NCBI RefSeq assembly: GCF_964188315.1
Contig: NC_135670.1
Location: 40,238,001 to 40,302,000, forward strand
Source of the DNA: Podarcis muralis
Taxonomy: Eukaryota
DNA: 64,000 bases
Direction: 5' to 3'
The notes under the pieces: generated by a model
What the model was told of the DNA's origin: nothing
What the model saw: only the letters and a program-made list of their open reading frames with translations
Databases searched by the model: none
Shown here: piece after piece, positions 1 to 43,323 of the stretch
How positions within the stretch are numbered: the stretch's first letter is position 1
How the letters are laid out: every line of letters starts with the position of its first letter
Program-made: the position numbers and the translations under genes

Positions 1-98
1 TCGACTTCCAAAATGTTTGACTTCCAAAGCAGCTTGGGGTTCATTGTGGGAAATGTAGAGAGAAATTAGTTCTCCCATTTCGCCTTTGTTGGATCCAA

Positions 99-34575: not shown

Positions 34576-34936
34576 ATGTGGTGTTGCTGTTTAGTCGTTT
34601 AGTCGTGTCCGACTCTTCGTGACCCCATGGACCAGAGCATGTCTTCCACTGCCTCCCACAGTTTGGTCAAACTCATGTTGGTAGCTTCGAGAACACTGTC
34701 CAACCATCTCGTCCTCTGTCGTCCCCTTCTCCTCCTCCTCCATGGATCACTGCCTTGCCATGGCGAAGGGGCTTGAATAACTCAGAGAGGCTATGAGCTA
34801 TGCCATGCAGGGCCACCCAAGATGAACAGGTCATAGTGGAGAGTTTTGACCAAACGTGATCCACCTGGAGCAGGAACCAGCAAGCCACTCCAGTATCCCT
34901 GCCAAGAAAACTCCATGGACAAAGGCAACAGGCATA
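34576..34936 (-). mobile_element. BovB (RTE) derivative: 3' end fused to an inverted piece of the 5' UTR
   Basis: 34585-34740 is the BovB 3' end on -; 34740-34932 resembles the BovB 5' UTR on +. Candidate 8-bp target duplication tatttatg. Confidence 0.65.
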
Positions 34937-35369
34937 TATTTATGTACTTTAGCCTATATTGTTTGGAGATGGTTTGGGTTTTTTTGTTTTTTTTTGTAAT
35001 GTTTGCCAAATTGTTTTTTTGTTTTTGTTATTTTGACAGAATTTACTCACGTGTTCTGTATTTTATATATTTGTATATTTCCAATGCTCTTCATTTCAGT
35101 GTTTTTTAATGTTTGCTGTGAAACTGCTTTGGGTACAATTCATTGTGGAAAAGCAGCATATAAGTAACCTCAATCAATCAACCAACCAAAAAATAATTAA
35201 AATAATTTGCCTTGCATTTTATATATCTAAAAGGTACATAATTAAGCAGGTAACAAAATAAACTTGTCGAGTCTCTAGAATAGAAATGGAATTGTGTTTA
35301 TTGATTGGGTGTTGGATAGACAGTGCATCTGGGCTCCATCTGTAAGCTGCTGGTGGAAAACATGAGCTG

Positions 35370-36758
35370 TCACTTAAGCACCAGGAAATAAGTGGTCCAG
35401 CCAGCCAAGAGCAGCGCCCCTAACAGCACTGTGTAACTGAACAGCACAAAAGCTAGGAGTTCCTTCAGCACCTTCAGGAAATGGACAGCAAACGATTCCT
35501 GCATGATTCTGGCTTTGCAATGTGGTGGAAATAAATGCATGGGAATAGTCTGATCTGCAAGGGAGACAGAGACAAAACAAAAGTAGGATTAAAGATGTAT
35601 TGTAAAGCAGAAACTGATCTTGTGATATACAACAGTGACCTAAGCCGATATATATAATAGAGCAATCACATACACGTTAACTCATAAGTAAGTTCTGCTG
35701 AATTCAACAGGGCTTGACCACAGTTTAAGTTGGTTAATGGCTAGAAATCTGTGCTCAGGCCGCTGATGGTTGTAGTACTCTGGGCAGATTTGAAAGTGGT
35801 TCTGCAAAATCTAAATTTGGAGTTTGAGACCAAGTAATATGTCATCTACACAAATGATTACTACACAAAGGGGTCAGCCAAACATGAGGAAATTAGACCC
35901 CGCAAATGGATTGTGTGCAGTTGGAGAACAAAACCTCTCAATATATAGCGGATAATGCATTAATACCACCTAAATGCACCAATAAAAAGCAGTCTGTTCC
36001 TCCAAAGGGAGGGAGCCTCCTTTAATATTTAATGTTATAATTGCATCTAATGGACAGACTGGCAGAAAACTTTTGCTTTGATTTAGGGTTGAGTACATAT
36101 TGTTTAGCTTGCATCTTTTTATCTGCCCCAAATAACCAGCATTAAAGTGGGAAATCCATTGTGGTAAAATTGATATACAGCACTACTGCAACATAGCCAT
36201 CTGCAGTGGCCCTTAAACTTTGGGGAAGTAAGGGCGCTGCACCCTTTCAGTTCCCAGGGCTTTGGAGCTTATATGCTTGGCTGCCCTATTCCATACTGCA
36301 CATTTTTGCCATTATTAAGTATAAAGATAAAAAAATCCTATTCTATCTCATGGTGTTTGTATATGAAAGGGTTTTTTTTTTAAGAGGCACACACACATTG
36401 AGAGGGTCACAGACTAAAGAAACACACTTTTGTCTCAACAACAGAAAAATAAAGCCAGGAAGTTAATCCAGGAAGATTATTTTTCTCACACAATATGAAA
36501 GCTGTTGGAAGTGAACTGAGTTTCCATAATGCAAAGCACCTGCAATAATTATTAAAAGCAATGATCGGATAAATTTGTAAAACTGTGTTTAATAATCTGT
36601 TAATTATTCTTAATATCAATATATGTCTGCTGATCTCATGCAAGGTTTTATTATATATATGAAGAAAACAATATAGTTATCAGACCACAAGTTTAAAATA
36701 TTTTACATGATATAAACTAAATTAGAAGAAGTTTCTTACCCTGGGCAAATGACGGCAT
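35370..36758 (-). CDS. Unrecognised small membrane protein (67 aa) split over two exons
   Basis: ATG at 36758, coding 36758-36740, donor GG|GTAAG; strong acceptor ttttgtctctgtctcccttgcag| at 35555/35554, coding 35554-35370 ending in TGA. Protein MPSFAQDQTIPMHLFPPHCKARIMQESFAVHFLKVLKELLAFVLFSYTVLLGALLLAGWTTYFLVLK. AATAAA at 35302-35297. Confidence 0.6.
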
Positions 36759-37142
36759 TTACTTAAAGTTGCTCTGCACCTTTGTTTCTGGTCTCTCCCT
36801 TTAGCGTCTGGCTCGTGGGAGGCTTGTGATGTAGCTGGATCTTCTTCGAGTCTGTTAATCTGGAGAGGCAGGCATAATGACGCTGTATTTACAAGGCAGC
36901 TTAAGTAGGAATGGACTAGGTGTGGTCAGGGACAGGACCGCAGGATATACAGAACTCCTTTGTTCATCTTCATTGTCACACAAAAATATCCCTACTGGGT
37001 TTTTTAAGTGAAAGTTAAATGCACGCAGCCTGGGTGTCTTAAAAATTGCATTGTACTGAATTTCATAAACTCTCATTCCCGCCCCCCACCACTTACAATT
37101 GTGCTTTTGTTTCTGGTTCTCACCGTCCACAATTTTCAGTAA

Positions 37143-37179
37143 CAGTTGTGTGTATGATTTCAGTTATATATAGCAGGTG
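37143..37179 (-). promoter_or_regulatory. Candidate core promoter of the small-protein gene (TATA/MEF2-like box with E-boxes)
   Basis: Minus-strand CTATATATAA at 37173-37164, E-boxes at 37174-37179 and 37143-37148, then donors GTGAGA (37123) and GTAAGT (37096) just downstream. Confidence 0.45.
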
Positions 37180-37543
37180 CTTAAGACAGGCACAGAAACC
37201 AGGGTGGCAAGGGCTGGGAAGTTGTGGCCCTCCACATGTTGTTGGGCTCAGTGCCCCCTAAGTCTTAGGCAGCATGGCCAGAAGTCAAGGATTATGGGAG
37301 TCATAGTTCAACAGCAACTGAAGGGTCACAGGTTCACCAACCCTGTAGAAGGGAAACAAGTATGCATAATCCAAACTAAAAAGTCCTCTAATATGTATTG
37401 ACAACTGTTGGCCGTGGGCTCAGGTGTAAGGAGAAGGAAAGATAACTATCAGGGTGACTCATACCTCCACCTCAGCTCCAATGTTTCAGGAAGCTTATGA
37501 TTTCCTGTACATTTCCTGTTACAATATTTTTAATGGTCCTGTG

Positions 37544-37733
37544 CATAGAAGCCAACTCCTAGGGGCCTAGGGGGCCTTGCCCTCCCCAATAAAATATTTG
37601 AGGGTGCCATGCCCCCCCCCAGTTGTTGGGCATTGCCATTCAAATAGTGTGTGTACACCACATTGTGTGATCAATTATGCAGGGTGGGGCTTACCTGGGC
37701 CACCACAATATTTTATTCAAGTTGGCACCCCTG
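37544..37733. mobile_element. MITE; a related copy lies inverted at 44476-44664
   Basis: Termini catagaagccaact / agttggcacccctg; interior is homologous to 44476-44664 in reverse. Confidence 0.6.
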
Positions 37734-38317
37734 GTCCTCTGGTCCTTAACACCAAAGGCAAAAATCCCCTTGTTTAAGAAAAACGAGTGGGTGACCCGTG
37801 ATGGTAAAGTTGCTGTAATTTGGCCCACTCAGCTGCCTGGTTCTTTCCACTTGGGATGATGGTGTGATTGTGACGTTGCTACCATTTTGATTTTCTCAAG
37901 ATGACTGGACCACCCAGCACCCTATTGCATCAGAGCAAAGGCATCTCCATATGTTTTGGATGACAATTCCCATCACAAATATCTCATTTCTTGGTTGAGT
38001 CCAGAGAGACTGGCACAGGGCCCATGGCTGATTCTTTTATTAAGAGTCCTAATATAGCTCAATTTGCATTACTGAATCGGGAATAAAAGGCATCTTATCT
38101 CATGACAGCAGTGAGACAGGGCACACAGACCTCCCATTTCAGAACAGCCATGCCTCCCACCATAAAACTATATTATAAATTATGTGGTTTTAAACCAACA
38201 GCTTTATGTCTCCTGCCATAAACCAATAACACATTAAGTTTTTTTTAAATACACGTGCCTTGGATCGACTACACATAAATTGCAAACAATAAAACCATCA
38301 GTTATAGTAAAGGCATA

Positions 38318-38671
38318 GTAAAGTAAAGGGACCCCTGACCATTAGGTCCAGTCGTGGCCGACTCTGGGGTTGCGGTGCTCATCTCGCTTTATTGGCCGAG
38401 GGAGCCGCCATACAGCTTCCGGGTCATGTGGCCAGCAGGACTAAGCCGCTTCTGGCGAACCAGAGCAGCGCACGGAAACGCCGTTTACCTTCCCGCCAGA
38501 GCGGTACCTATTTATCTACTTGCACTTTGACGTGCTTTCGAACTGCTAGGTTGGCAGGAGCAGGGACCAAGGAATGGGAGCTCACCCCGTTGCAGGGATT
38601 CGAACCGCTGACCTTCTGATCAGCAAGCCCAAGAGGCTCTGTGGTTTAACCCACAGCGCCACCCGCATCCC
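38318..38671 (-). mobile_element. Sauria SINE, second subfamily
   Basis: Same head and body as the other copies but a different tail-proximal part (gggacccctgaccattaggtccag); 14-bp target duplication atagtaaaggcata at 38304-38317 and 38672-38685. Confidence 0.9.
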
Positions 38672-38939
38672 ATAGTAAAGGCATACATGTAGTAAATTGT
38701 TACTTGAAATCAATTAATTTGAACAACTTACTTTCTCGGGGTTTACCCCTGAAAATTGACATCTTTTCGAAACATATTGGGAAAGAGAATGCAATACTGT
38801 ACTTGCTTAAGTTCTGTTTAGTAAAGGAATGTATTTATCTGCTTGTTAGCCTGAGGTTGGTTTCTCAACCTACAATTTTTGTGTGCTAAAAACAGGAGGC
38901 TAATTCTCCCCTTAATGCAGCATCTGTTGTAGATGGAAG

Positions 38940-40296
38940 TTAAGTGATTGAGCGGGTGGTTGCTGAACAACTCCCAGCACACCTGGAGGATGTGGACCAT
39001 TTGGATCCCTTCCAATCGGGATTCAGGCTTCATCATGGGACTAAAACTGTCTTGGTTGTGCTGGTCGATGATCTCTGGCGGGCTAGGGACAAAGGTGAGT
39101 GTTGTTCCCTAGTCCTGCTGGATCTCTCAGCGGCTTTTGATACCATTGACGATAACATCCTTCTGGAATGTCTAGAGGGGCTGGGAGCTGGGGGCACTGT
39201 TATACACTCCTTCTGGCTGTGTCCAGAAAGTGGTGGTGGGGGGTGAGTGTTCAGACCCCTGGGCTCTCACTTGTGGGGTGCCTCAGAGCTCCATCCTCTT
39301 GCCCCAAGTTTTTTAACATTTATATGAAGCCACCTAGAGAGATCATCAGGGGGTTTGGGCTGGGTGTTCATCAGTATGCAGATGATACCCAGCTCTCTCT
39401 TTTAAATCAGAACCAGTGATGGCGGTGAATGTCCTGTGAGTGTCTGGATGGATGGCGGCTAACAGATTGAAGTTGAATCCTGACAAGACAGAAGTACTGT
39501 TTTTGGGGGACAGGGGGCGGGCGGGTGTGGAGGATTCCCTGGTCCTGAATGGGGTAACTGTGCCCCTGAAGGACCAGGTGCGCAGCCTGGGAGTCATTTT
39601 GGACTCACAGCTGTCCATGGAGGCGCAGGTCAATTCTGTGTCCAGGGCAGCTGTCTACCAGCTCCACCTGGTACGCAGGCTGAGACCCTACCTGCCCGCG
39701 GACTGTCTCGCCAGAGTGGTGCATGCTCTAGTTATCTCCCGCTTGGACTACTGCAACGCACTCTACGTGGGGCTACCTTTGAAGGTGACCCGGAAACTGC
39801 AATTAATCCAGAATGCAGCAGCTAGACTGGTGATTGGGAATGTCCGCCAAGACCATATAACACCGGTCCTGAGAGATCTGCATTGGCTCCCAGTATGTTT
39901 CAGAGCACAATTCAAAGTGTTGGTGCTGACCTTTAAAGCCCTAAACGGCCTCGGTCCAGTATACCTGCAGGAGCATCTCCACCCCCATCATTCAGCCTAG
40001 ACACTGAGGTTCAGCGCCAAGGGCCTTCTGGCAGTTCCCTCATTGTGAGAAGTGAGGTCACAGGGAACCAGGCAGAGGGCCTTCTGGGTAGGATGCCTGC
40101 CATGTAGAACGTCCTTCCATCAGATGTCAAGGCAATAAGCAACTATCTTACTTTTAAAAGACATCTGAAGGCAGCCCTGTTTAGGGAAGTTTTTAATGTT
40201 TAATGCTGTATTGTGTTTTTAATATTTGGTTGGGAGCTGCCCAGAGTGGGTGGGGAAACCCAGACAGATGGGCGGGGTATAAATAATAAATTATTA
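38940..40296 (+). mobile_element. L2-clade LINE, 5'-truncated and degenerate
   Basis: LDPFQSGFR, LLDLSAAFDTID, QYADDTQL, NRLKLNPDKTE, SRLDYCNALY; (TAA)-rich tail. Confidence 0.9.
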
Positions 40297-41147
40297 TAAG
40301 TGTCAGACCCAGAGTCTGCTATATACACATCACACTTAGAAGTCCATTTTGCACAGAAGAAAAATTGTCACAGCTTCTCCAGAACATTACAGCAACATTT
40401 AAAGGCGACTTCTGCTGTAAATGCAAGTCTCGTTTCCTGAGCTCAATCCAAGACATCTTTCCTCTAAACACCACATGGCAAGTGCTTTCTCAGCAGGCTT
40501 ACTGCTCAAATTGTGTCTGTACACACCCTTTATCAGTACCACACTCACCTACACTTTAAAAATAAAGTATATTTTTGACCCTTAATGCTGCCTGCCTCCT
40601 TCTGGTTATTTCAGATGAAAGCATCTCTATTTAAAGTGACATGTTTCACTGAGATGCATTATAGCTTAGCAAATGGACTCTAAATTTAATCAGGCACCCT
40701 CATTATCGAATTATTATCCTTGGGATAAGCAAGCCCTTCCCCAGAAACAGATCAAAATCAAGCTACTCAGGAAGCCATTTAGGATGCAATTACTCCCCCA
40801 GTGATATGGTGAAAAATGCTAGCTTTTCCCCAGAAACATGCAAGCTCTTCCTCATGTACAATCTATAAACTGACCCTGGAAATTTGAAGAAAGCAATGAA
40901 GGACACAATTGCCTTTACAGCAATAACTGAAGCTTAATGTGAAAGTATCACGTACTTGTTCTGAAGGAGATTCATTTACTTGTGCTTCTGATACAGAAAC
41001 ATTAGTACACATTAACAATTGCAGAAAGAACTATTTTCCTTGCGAATTTGGCACTTGCGCGTTTTGCTTGAATTATAAATTCTAGTAGCTACTTTTCTTG
41101 TTTATCTTTATAGTTGCCCATTCTTTATTGGGAAATCCTGACTCCAG

Positions 41148-41395
41148 GTAATAATAATTTATTATTTGTACCCCGCCCATCTGGCTGGGTTTCCCCAGCC
41201 ACTCTGCGCGGCTTCCATAGAAACCAAAGATACAGTAAAATATCACAGATTAAAAACTTCCCTGAACAGGGCTGCCTTAAGATGTCTTCTGAACGTCAGG
41301 TAGTTATTTATCGCTTTGACACCTGATGGGAGGGCATTCCACAGGGCGGGCGCCACTACCGAGAAGGCCCTCTGCCTGGTTCCCTGTAGCTTTGC
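41148..41395 (-). mobile_element. L2 3' end fragment
   Basis: Reverse-complement homology to 40060-40296. Confidence 0.75.
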
Positions 41396-43323
41396 TTCAG
41401 GGAAGGCAAAAGAAACCAAATTAATTTAGTTTCAGGGCACAAAAAATTACTTTTAGGGAACTTTAAGCCCATACAAAAATTGAGTTGATGGAACAGTGCT
41501 ACAACACTGGATTTGCTTTGTGAGAATGCTTGCTCCCTCTGGAATACCCAAGAGAATGTGCTAGAACTTGACATGCAACACAACTTAAAAGTTAAGAGCA
41601 AGCAAGTCTCCAGGAGCAATGACTGAGAAAAGCACCTGGATGTTCAGGTGAACTATCAGGAGAAAGGCAAATCCATCAATTGTGGCTTTCCTCAGTTCTC
41701 ATTTTCCCCATCTTCAGTTTTCTACATTTCACAATCAGTTTGAGGATTTTTAAAGTGTTTATGACAATTCGTCAGCATTTAGTGCAAAGTCTTCTTAATA
41801 TAATTTTTTTGTATGCAATTTTGAGTAATATACACATTTTTGCAAAGCAGTGTCCCCTAATTTAATGCAGTTTTTGTATGTTATTTCCACCAGTACATTT
41901 TTTTTGTACACATTACTTGGGCTGGAGAAGTGCAAATTTCAAAGGTTGGTTATGTTTCAGTAGGTGTAAATTACGTTGATTTGCCTTTAAATACAAATTG
42001 AATCAAATTTCTCCACTATCCCCTAATTGTCAGAGACAAAAGTCATGATCCATCATTGTCCACAACCCAAGACGTGCAAAAGTTCCTACATGTTCCACAA
42101 TCTCTCTGTGTATTTTTACCAAGATTAAACAAGTCTGACCACAACACTCTGCAACAGCAGCACCCTGAAATTTAAATATCCGAGATGACTTTGTCTTGAG
42201 AACTTATTTCGAAGAATAATAAAGACAATTTAATACTTATTTGTATTAAACAACATATACACACAATGGAAAACCGTTGGAACTGTATCTTTATAATCAA
42301 CATTTGTCTCCTTGAATTTACACATGTAGAACTCCAGCACCCTCAAAAAGGTATCAGCATTAATCTGACCACTGCTGTCTTCAGAGAAAAACAGTAAAAA
42401 CTGGAGGCACACCAAAATGATCCAGGATCTTTTTGCAATCCCCGCCCATTACATTCACTGTACAGGTTACAAACATACTTAATGTAAAGCTTTTAAAGTA
42501 AATTTTTAAGGAAAAGCTGACATGAAATGAGAGATTTAGATACATTTACAGCACACAAGAAAAATTGAGAACTCCCTCGTTTCTGCAGAGAAAATTGTAG
42601 GAGAGGGGGGAATCAGATTTTGTTGCTGTATGTCTCAGGATGTGTGGAAAGTAAAGCATGGGTTGAGAGAATGGAGGTGTTACCAACAGCATCATATAAA
42701 TGGTCGGGACCAAAGAACTGAAGCCATTTGTAAACTTAACATATTCAGGGTTTTAGAACATGCTTTCAATAGGACTTGCAGAATGGTGGCCTAAGAGGAG
42801 ACATAGCCATGTACAGGTCTACAAACGTTATACAACATCGCATGCGGAGAAAGTTTAAGAATGGCATTAAGAGGCAGAACTCAAAAAACAAAGTGACAGT
42901 ACAAAGGATGGAGGGGGTGAAGTGAAGTATCAGGGAAATCTTCTTGAGAGATGTATGGAATTGTGGAATATGTTAATTCCCAAGGAGATGCTTAGAAACT
43001 GCAATAAACAGATAGATAGACAACCTGGGAATAATGATAGTGGATGCACTGCAGGGCCGAGTCAAAGCACAGGCCACATAATTTAAGTTTCCTCCCAAGC
43101 TTATTTTTCAGAAAGCAATGTAAGGAACTATCTTCAAGGCATTTCATTTCTTTTATCGTTCCCTCTTTCAGAGAGGCATCAGCCTCTTGCAAAGTTATGG
43201 ACAGAGTCAATGCAAGAACACCACGCTTTCTGCCCTGTATCTAGCAGCAAGGCCAGCTTCCATTCGCACTGCCAGGATACCTCTTCTCTGCTTCTTATCA
43301 TTACACCTATGCAGATTCTCGTT

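Follow-up and report, generated by a model that had tools for sequence, protein, structure and literature searches.

The 64,000-nucleotide stretch of Podarcis muralis DNA analysed here (hereafter the window) carries, on its minus strand between VPS33A and DIABLO, a small gene that is real, spliced and protein-coding. This locus is the P. muralis copy (LOC114586625) of a membrane microprotein family that spans the jawed vertebrates. We regard its membership, as a real coding gene, in the family of LOC128125816 homologs as virtually certain. The complete account, in which membership is combined with the mechanism of action proposed below, is offered with only moderate confidence.

Identity of the gene

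The first-pass annotation had presented this locus as a hidden gene in a position where no human protein-coding gene was known. Neither statement survives comparison with existing annotation. The gene is not hidden, because the window is the annotated assembly (GCA_964188315.1, 100% identity over 21.4 kb) and the 67-aa open reading frame (ORF) matches RefSeq XP_077776120.1 ("uncharacterized protein LOC114586625 [Podarcis muralis]") at 100% identity. The same sequence is also present, again at 100% identity, as CAI5797212.1 of P. lilfordi. RefSeq labels the family "uncharacterized LOC128125816 homolog", such that the names of the orthologues derive from human LOC128125816, whereas the mouse-type counterpart is called Gm49027 ("predicted gene 49027") and a rodent copy is located between VPS33A and DIABLO. 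Thus, the gene itself is already known from RefSeq models, both for this genome and for dozens of other vertebrates. Searches of the searchable literature for LOC128125816, Gm49027, the peptide strings, or VPS33A plus DIABLO combined with PhyloCSF or microprotein yielded no paper on the family.

Transcript structure

The gene produces a polyadenylated, minus-strand mRNA of about 0.45 kb. All sequence motifs listed in the first-pass annotation occur on the minus strand where they had been placed, and they are given here together with the exons and intron derived from RNA contigs.

37173-37164, minus strand: TATA-like box CTATATATAA (sequence)
After 37124 and after 37097, minus strand: GT donors (sequence)
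Before 36859, minus strand: acceptor cag (sequence)
36740..36859, minus strand: exon as spliced in the X1 and X2 contigs that use the 36859 acceptor
36740..36929, minus strand: colinear, probably ancestral first exon (X5 contig; the 5′ end near 36929 is approximate)
After 36740, minus strand: donor gtaag (sequence)
35555..36739, minus strand: intron of 1185 nt, GT..AG, phase 1 for the long ORF (joint in X1, X5, X7 and X23)
Before 35554, minus strand: pyrimidine tract and acceptor ttgcag (sequence)
35281..35554, minus strand: terminal exon, coding part plus a 3′UTR of about 89 nt (X1 and X7 contigs)
35302-35297, minus strand: AATAAA poly(A) signal (sequence), with cleavage at about 35281 (X7 contig)

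The predicted joining of 36740 to 35554 is observed in one contig each from X1, X5 and X7 (studies P1, P2 and P3) and in one raw read from X23, with the ends of the joint reading CT..AC on the plus strand. Its GGTAAG donor is conserved in five of five species compared. The terminal exon is covered from 35554 to 35267 in the X1 contig and from 35554 to 35281 in the X7 contig. The latter ends at 35281 in a T-run plus Illumina adapter, representing the poly(A) tail of a minus-strand transcript, downstream of the AATAAA signal. The block from 35569 to 35245 is 83% identical to its counterpart in Elgaria. The depth of the RNA contigs is low (word depth 6-12), and 14 RNA runs, carrying two species labels between them, contain 12-27% of the words sampled, which is about the share that the exons would give.

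The 5′ portion of the gene departs from the three-exon structure originally drawn. Specifically, the proposed first exon and its TATA box (37173-37097) are supported neither by RNA nor by conservation. RNA depth is 0 over 37056-37243 in X1, X5, X7 and X23, the RNA contigs report no joint from 36859 into this interval, and similarity to Elgaria ends at 37033, short of the proposed exon. The acceptor at 36859 is indeed used in the contigs from X1 (438 nt) and X2 (435 nt), each of which reads 30 unplaced letters, then 36859-36740, then 35554 onward. These 30 letters have no placement within 34800-42699 among the joints listed, and their source may lie within VPS33A or within 37600-42699. The AG of this acceptor is present in Podarcis and Elgaria only, and is lacking in gecko, turtle and frog. 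Other contigs continue colinearly upstream of 36859, reaching 36866 (X7), 36929 (X5) and 37024 (X1). The X5 contig joins 36929-36740 to 35554 and exhibits no splice upstream of 36929, and the first-exon block can be aligned in gecko, turtle and frog from about 36933. Comparison with turtle and frog indicates that the ancestral gene has two exons.

Two other leads were rejected. The conserved block at 40599-40824, which is weakly transcribed, lacks the terminal GT donor that would permit it to serve as exon 1, and the protein P0074, considered as a transcript clue, comes from a genomic ORF that is not spliced and runs on through intron sequence.

Sequence conservation is also evident at two non-coding sites on this strand.

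36910..36929, minus strand: 20-nt motif CTGACCACACCTAGTCCATT at the start of the conserved first exon (cross-species identity)
35997..36068, minus strand: conserved non-coding element in the intron (sequence identity)

The 5′ motif, which frog and lizard share without a single difference, is a further small feature of interest at this locus. It matches at 20 of 20 positions in Elgaria, the turtle Carettochelys, the frog Ascaphus and P. lilfordi, and at 19 of 20 in the gecko, and it occurs a single time in the window. The motif may be a promoter or 5′-leader element. An Rfam scan of 35000-37600 returned nothing at E <= 1, and therefore the motif is not a known RNA family. The intronic element is 78-81% identical to bird, turtle and gecko sequences and 78% identical to that of the L003 lizard, and a 34-nt match is found in frog.

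A 44-codon core under purifying selection

Translation across the 36740/35554 splice gives exactly the 67-aa protein quoted in the first-pass annotation, and the ATG at 36758 is present with the in-frame TAA before it. The shorter form beginning with MQESF, which had been mentioned as an alternative, turns out to be the conserved unit. The frame is divided as follows.

36740..36758, minus strand: first 19 nt of the 67-aa frame, with ATG at 36758 in weak context (T at -3, C at +4)
35505..35554, minus strand: rest of the N-terminal extension (residues 7-23 of the 67-aa form), squamate-only
35370..35504, minus strand: core coding sequence, 44 codons from MQESF, with ATG at 35504-35502 and TGA at 35372-35370 (translation, alignment A1)

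A word-based search recovered 70 family matches, and a profile search run exhaustively against 1.84 billion representatives recovered 36 cluster representatives, all at E <= 1e-10. Search E-values for the family ranged from 2e-31 to 1e-7. All named matches are from vertebrates and include shark, teleosts, amphibians, turtles, birds, squamates and mammals. The exhaustive search returned the family itself only and no distant relative. In alignment A1 (27 sequences, shark to mammals), 20 columns are invariant and the window protein carries all of them. The conserved C-terminal core comprises about 40 residues, with E, F-V-L, S-Y-T, G-A-L, A-G-W-T-T-Y and the terminal K invariant, and the C-terminal signature of the family reads ELLAFVL.SYT.L.GALLLAGWTTYF.VLK. 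Core identity between LOC128125816 homologs in the lizard and other vertebrates is 57-95%, and the core itself is no different in the lizard.

The check for purifying selection called for in the first-pass annotation gives dN/dS values of 0-0.16 for most pairs over the 44-codon core. Podarcis and the L003 lizard differ by 15 synonymous and 0 nonsynonymous changes, Podarcis and Elgaria by 8 and 0, and Podarcis and frog by 16.5 and 4.5. As judged from these substitution patterns, the last 44 codons are under strong purifying selection, from which we infer that the core is translated.

A small gene with such low RNA contig depth could in principle be a non-coding RNA or the transcript of a regulatory element, with an ORF present by chance. 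However, over > 400 million years amino-acid replacements have been far scarcer than silent changes, of 41 columns 36 vary at the third codon position versus 9 at the second (and 17 at the first), and the ORF is intact across all vertebrate classes sampled. This pattern of selection and codon-position variation effectively refutes a non-coding reading, which is left with almost no probability.

The exons might otherwise function mainly as alternative 3′ exons of VPS33A read-through transcripts, such that the small ORF is a by-product. In every 10-kb flank that includes VPS33A, that of the teleost among them, the gene follows VPS33A on the same strand. The 30 nt joined to 36859 in the X1 and X2 contigs may lie within VPS33A, and frame 0 is open throughout exon 36859-36740. 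Moreover, a table entry in PMC8134494 gives human ENSG00000256861 (AC048338.1) as "paralog of VPS33A", although as it stands there the entry is only a candidate for a link to this gene. Selection, however, falls on the small ORF's own frame, and in-frame stops are located just upstream of this ORF in both lizard and turtle. Furthermore, species that lack the 36859 acceptor (gecko, turtle and frog) carry the colinear first exon with its conserved 5′ motif, and the X5 contig begins at 36929 without any upstream splice. We consider a read-through origin very improbable and treat the locus as a gene with its own product.

The N-terminal extension

The 67-aa product stands as an ORF and as a transcript, but its first 23 residues exhibit little or no constraint at the protein level. 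Comparative sequence data indicate that this N-terminal extension is confined to squamates and that its evolution is almost neutral. Its dN/dS values are 0.27-0.85, where the core of those same pairs of species gives 0-0.09. Differences within the extension fall about equally on the three codon positions, and AlphaFold predicts it to be disordered (pLDDT about 52). Lizard models encode the extension across the intron, whereas bird and rodent models are single-exon ORFs of 44 aa.

Could the extension nevertheless add a lineage-specific function, such that the functional product in squamates is the 67-aa form initiated at AUG 36758? Podarcis, Elgaria and the gecko Heteronotia all retain the ATG with its 19 nt, the gtaag donor and the phase-1 acceptor, and RefSeq contains models of 64-67 aa from lacertids, Pogona, Tiliqua, Rhineura and geckos. 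The long frame is still open across the sampled lizard lineages, where the 67-aa form could be the main product. In addition to the near-neutral pattern and predicted disorder noted above, several observations weigh against this possibility. The context of AUG 36758 is weak, models for snakes and Phrynosoma begin at later AUGs, and turtle and frog have no ATG at the 36758 position although they keep the exon. By comparison, the AUG at 35504 has A at -3. A functional 67-aa form is therefore rather unlikely in our estimation, and we favor the 44-aa core as the functional unit.

Predicted membrane character

The apolar C-terminus resembling a tail anchor, as described in the first-pass annotation, is a 28-residue apolar run that follows E38 and ends at L66 (residues 39-66 of 67). 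The run has a GRAVY value of 2.04, its best 19-residue window (39-57) reaches 2.45, and the final Lys is the sole charge after E38. AlphaFold predicts one helix at residues 19-66, with pLDDT of 91-96 over residues 31-60. In teleosts an Arg replaces G58, which fits a placement of residues 58-67 at the membrane interface rather than in the membrane core. No 19-residue window within residues 1-30 exceeds 0.2, as judged by Kyte-Doolittle mean only, and thus no N-terminal hydrophobic signal is seen by this measure. Together, these features make a single-pass membrane protein of the tail-anchor type highly probable. Its orientation is not fixed by the positive-inside rule because the flanking charges are nearly balanced.

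Domain and structure searches place the protein in no established class. Pfam gives 0 families for the window protein at E <= 10, and a profile search of PDB chain sequences gives 0 matches at the same threshold. When all 27 family members were compared with Pfam, DUF3040 and SP_C-Propep each matched one member at E of about 0.06-0.07, which is chance level, and both were dismissed. The best score in an ESM Atlas feature search, 0.82, is likewise within chance.

Gene neighborhood and the relationship to DIABLO

Synteny was read from the Pfam assignments of neighboring genes in 10-kb flanks, with Sec1 denoting VPS33A and Smac_DIABLO denoting DIABLO. The order Sec1, ORF, Smac_DIABLO is observed in Podarcis, Elgaria, turtle, bird and Peromyscus, and in frog and gecko DIABLO comes next after the ORF. 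In Salvelinus the order is Sec1, ORF, TMED gene. The gene is single-copy; it follows VPS33A on the same strand and, in tetrapods, precedes DIABLO.

This arrangement raises the possibility that the microprotein is tail-anchored in the mitochondrial outer membrane, participates with DIABLO in apoptosis and, in mammals, is co-expressed with it as an upstream cistron. In every tetrapod examined, the gene immediately precedes DIABLO on the same strand. In Peromyscus only 380 bp separate its stop codon from the DIABLO ATG, with a GC-rich interval that lacks AATAAA, and a mammalian position that almost touches the DIABLO start codon poses the question of bicistronic expression. A C-terminal tail consisting of a single basic residue would also be compatible with a mitochondrial anchor. 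Yet the TMED gene that follows the ORF in Salvelinus demonstrates that the link to DIABLO is not universal, and the lizard gene is polyadenylated at a site of its own, some 4 kb ahead of DIABLO. Mitochondrial tail anchors are short and moderately hydrophobic, whereas ER-directed anchors are more hydrophobic, and a 28-residue segment of such high hydrophobicity is better suited to the latter. Alignment A1 contains no BH3-like motif of the L-x-x-x-G-D-E type, as no G-D/E pair occurs in the cytosolic part of any member, and neither the window protein nor the 27 members match a Bcl-2 or BH3 model in Pfam. Gene neighborhood is in any case weak evidence for function in vertebrates. A mitochondrial role alongside DIABLO is therefore quite unlikely, and we tentatively propose the ER or endomembranes, rather than mitochondria, as the location of the protein.

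A possible mode of action

We propose that ribosomes would scan past the weak-context AUGs at 36758 and 35540 and start mainly at AUG 35504 to yield the 44-aa protein, and that the 67-aa form may also be made. At termination the apolar segment would still be largely inside the ribosome tunnel, and therefore insertion would occur after translation in the manner of tail-anchored proteins. A short amphipathic N-terminal helix would reside on the cytosolic side, residues from about 39 to 57 (67-aa numbering) would cross the bilayer, and the aromatic GWTTYF.VLK end would be positioned at the far interface. Because nearly all positions of the membrane helix are invariant, we infer that the protein is a small subunit, regulatory or structural, whose helix packs onto one specific membrane-protein partner or onto itself. 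Precedents for such an arrangement include the action of regulins on SERCA and the small subunits present in membrane complexes. The chance that the protein acts as a partner-binding transmembrane subunit is about even.

The regulins (phospholamban, sarcolipin, myoregulin, endoregulin, another-regulin and DWORF) offer an analogy for how this protein might act. They are of similar size, about 30-65 aa, and share with the microprotein a single C-terminal transmembrane helix, a short preceding cytosolic helix, almost no luminal tail and a concentration of conservation in the membrane helix. The likeness concerns possible action, as the profile search gives no link to regulin families and none of the 27 family members matches the Pfam models for phospholamban or sarcolipin at E <= 1.

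Tail-anchored proteins such as Sec61 beta, cytochrome b5, SNAREs and the BCL-2 family tails have the hydrophobic segment at the extreme C-terminus. Like these proteins, the microprotein has a single residue beyond the segment and no N-terminal hydrophobic signal. With a length of 44-67 aa it is probably too short for co-translational targeting, which points to post-translational insertion with a cytosolic N-terminus. Unlike members of this class, its cytosolic part comprises only about 15 residues with essentially no functional domain, and the anchor is the conserved part.

Implications

A bolder extension of this proposal, which we consider unlikely, is that the 44-aa protein is an obligatory micro-subunit or regulator of a core vertebrate membrane machine and, in mammals, an upstream cistron in the DIABLO unit. 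If true, this would explain why a membrane helix has remained almost frozen since the origin of jawed vertebrates, and the short distance between the mammalian cistron and the DIABLO start would couple the expression of both proteins.

With 20 of its 44 residues invariant from shark to mammals, the protein is among the most conserved vertebrate microproteins, and the family represents a well-defined candidate for knockout, localization and interactome studies of small membrane proteins.

Transcript structure and annotation

All of the motifs from which the first-pass annotation had assembled a three-exon gene between VPS33A and DIABLO are present in the sequence, on the minus strand, where it had placed them:

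37173-37164, minus strand: CTATATATAA box, read as TATA-like
37124 and 37097, minus strand: GT donors directly after each position
36859, minus strand: splice acceptor directly before
36758, minus strand: ATG of the 67-aa ORF, with an in-frame TAA just 5′ of it
36740, minus strand: gtaag donor directly after
35554, minus strand: pyrimidine tract and ttgcag directly before
35302-35297, minus strand: AATAAA

When the 1185-nt, phase-1 intron between 36740 and 35554 is removed, the frame opened by the ATG at 36758 encodes precisely the 67-aa protein that had been predicted. This joint is carried by one contig in each of the RNA runs X1, X5 and X7, which come from three separate studies, and by one raw read of run X23. 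Its ends read CT..AC on the plus strand, and thus GT..AG on the minus strand. At 35281 the X7 contig gives way to a run of T followed by adapter sequence, which is a poly(A) tail, about 16 nt past the AATAAA. Each of 14 RNA runs (two species labels) contains 12-27% of the words sampled from 35275-37180, about the share expected from exons alone.

The gene is not hidden, as had been supposed. Specifically, its terminal-exon peptide is 100% identical to the 67-aa RefSeq protein XP_077776120.1, "uncharacterized protein LOC114586625 [Podarcis muralis]", and 21,389 bases of the window are identical to the GCA_964188315.1 contig bearing LOC114586625; the gene is therefore already annotated. A P. lilfordi database entry carries the same 67-aa sequence. 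Relatives bear the name "uncharacterized LOC128125816 homolog", which implies that a human counterpart gene exists, and one rodent entry has the UniRef name "Predicted gene, 49027". No mention of the gene identifiers or the peptide was found in the literature searched. The initial proposal was largely right: its splice joint, reading frame, membrane tail and even its 44-aa alternative stand, whereas a hidden gene lacking a human counterpart and the model of a first exon with a TATA box do not.

The 5′ exon and the ancestral gene

Over the exon 1 that had been proposed (37056-37243), four runs show no RNA depth at all, and similarity to Elgaria ceases at 37033, not reaching the TATA-like box. 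The 36859 acceptor is used in X1 and X2 contigs, whose 30 letters upstream of it have no place in 34800-42699 among the joints listed, although 37600-42699 may still hold them. Other contigs run on colinearly upstream: X7 to 36866, a low-depth X1 contig to 37024, and X5 to 36929, exactly its first base. The colinear leader holds a 6-codon upstream ORF (MPASPD, then stop; 36855-36875, minus strand), which splicing at 36859 deletes.

From about 36933 to a conserved GGTAAG donor, the 5′ exon can be aligned among lizards, gecko, turtle and frog. This block opens with a short motif:

36910-36929, minus strand: 20-nt motif CTGACCACACCTAGTCCATT, also at L008:7378, L011:8525, L010:9830 and L009:9833 in loci of other species

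Elgaria, turtle, frog and P. lilfordi carry the motif unchanged, gecko matches it at 19/20 positions, and a TATAAT-type run lies directly upstream of it in turtle and frog. A search allowing up to 4 mismatches did not find it in the loci of bird, rodent and salmonid, and no Rfam family matched it. By eye, an ACCACA (RUNX-like) core and a CACCT core can be recognized within it. The AG at 36859 is present only in Podarcis and Elgaria. Given this distribution, the alignable 5′ exon, the shared motif and the X5 start at 36929, the ancestral gene has two exons and starts near the 20-nt motif.

Several other elements of the region are conserved or transcribed. An intergenic block at 40482-40976 (core 40657-40733, minus strand) is kept in Elgaria, another lizard and turtle (79%), and a low-depth X1 contig spans 40599-40824 within it; it is probably not exon 1, because its end lacks a GT donor. 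Summed RNA-contig depth is very high (10^3 to 10^5) over 34800-34987, 38300-38700, 39100-40300 and 41100-41500, where variant letters and loose ends abound. These stretches are interspersed repeats found in many transcripts, and they complicated the search for exon 1. In the VPS33A 3′UTR (41923-42699, minus strand), contig pieces end at 42291, 42257, 41967 and 41923 in different runs, which suggests that VPS33A has alternative 3′ ends. Finally, the intron holds a non-coding element (35997-36068, minus strand), AT-rich with TAAT/ATTA cores. Its conservation is 78-81% in a second lizard, gecko, turtle and bird, with a 34-nt match in frog, and its bird counterpart is found 413 nt 5′ of the ORF.

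Selection on the 44-residue core

The last 41 codons were compared across nine species:

Differences from Podarcis in the last 41 codons
Lizard of locus L003: 15 synonymous, 0 nonsynonymous
Elgaria: 8 synonymous, 0 nonsynonymous
Carettochelys: 13.5 synonymous, 1.5 nonsynonymous
Ascaphus: 16.5 synonymous, 4.5 nonsynonymous

Core dN/dS is 0-0.16 in most pairs, as expected of purifying selection, and 0.35 and 0.53 in two mammal pairs; most pairs that include Salvelinus have reached saturation in dS. Variable columns number 36/41 at third codon positions and 9/41 at second. Neither a chance ORF nor constraint at the nucleotide level alone is compatible with this bias and the low dN/dS.

Podarcis, Elgaria and a gecko have in common the ATG, the 19 nt that it opens, the gtaag donor and the phase-1 acceptor. 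The 23-codon N-terminal extension that they encode shows dN/dS of 0.27-0.85 and no codon-position bias, compared with 0-0.09 for the core in the same species pairs, and turtle and frog retain the 5′ exon without the ATG. The -3 base is T at the first AUG (36758) but A at 35504, the third AUG in the lizard, which opens MQESF and begins the conserved 44 residues. We conclude that the product under conservation is the 44-aa form, first raised only as an alternative, and that the 67-aa form may exist as a weakly constrained isoform in squamates only.

Range and synteny of the family

Homology searches found members in catshark, in salmonid, characiform and cyprinodontiform teleosts, and in frog, three salamanders, turtles, many birds, lizards, snakes, a monotreme, marsupials and placentals; neither invertebrates nor cyclostomes appeared among the family matches. 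When 1.84 billion representatives were searched exhaustively with a family profile, 36 clusters matched, all at E <= 1e-10 and none weaker. By this measure the family is sharply bounded, without detectable distant kin.

The order VPS33A (Sec1 family), ORF, Smac_DIABLO, on one strand, is kept in Podarcis, Elgaria, Carettochelys (turtle), Oenanthe (bird) and Peromyscus (rodent), and DIABLO follows the ORF in frog and gecko. In Salvelinus the order is VPS33A, ORF, TMED gene. Together, these arrangements identify the 3′ side of VPS33A as the stable partner.

In Peromyscus (L004:10001-10515), one exon inside a GC-rich island holds the whole 44-aa ORF. Only 380 bp, free of AATAAA, separate its end from the DIABLO start codon, and for this reason the two may share transcripts. 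Three mammalian proteins (P0112, P0113 and P0114) track the family sequence to about LLLAG and a fourth (P0115) only to GALLL; P0114 just stops there, and the others continue into unrelated sequence. Either a cryptic splice donor inside the ORF or errors of prediction could account for this pattern; none of the added tails matches a Pfam family.

A near-invariant, predicted membrane helix

The conserved unit in an alignment of 27 family members (A1) is the C-terminal 44 residues, with 20 invariant columns: an E, F-V-L, S-Y-T, G-A-L, A-G-W-T-T-Y, the terminal K and several Leu. In the numbering of the 67-aa form, an amphipathic stretch (residues 27-41) leads into an unbroken apolar run of 28 residues after E38 and then a single Lys (GRAVY 2.04), the best 19-residue hydropathy window being 39-57 (2.45). 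With the family alignment, AlphaFold predicts one helix over 19-66, with pLDDT of 91-96 over 31-60 and a disordered N-terminus. Only five positions vary within the apolar run, and their changes are conservative. Arg replaces G58 in many teleosts, which suggests that the GWTTYF.VLK end would lie at the membrane interface.

When translation of a 44-aa protein ends, its anchor is still inside the ribosome tunnel, so that membrane insertion would have to come after translation, as established for tail-anchored proteins. The protein has no match in Pfam, no relative by sequence among solved structures and no informative neighbor in an Atlas search. From the near-complete invariance of the helix, we infer that it would pack tightly against a partner or itself, and this packing is most likely its mode of action. 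Although not a member of those families, the protein would work in a way similar to regulin-type and small-subunit micropeptides.
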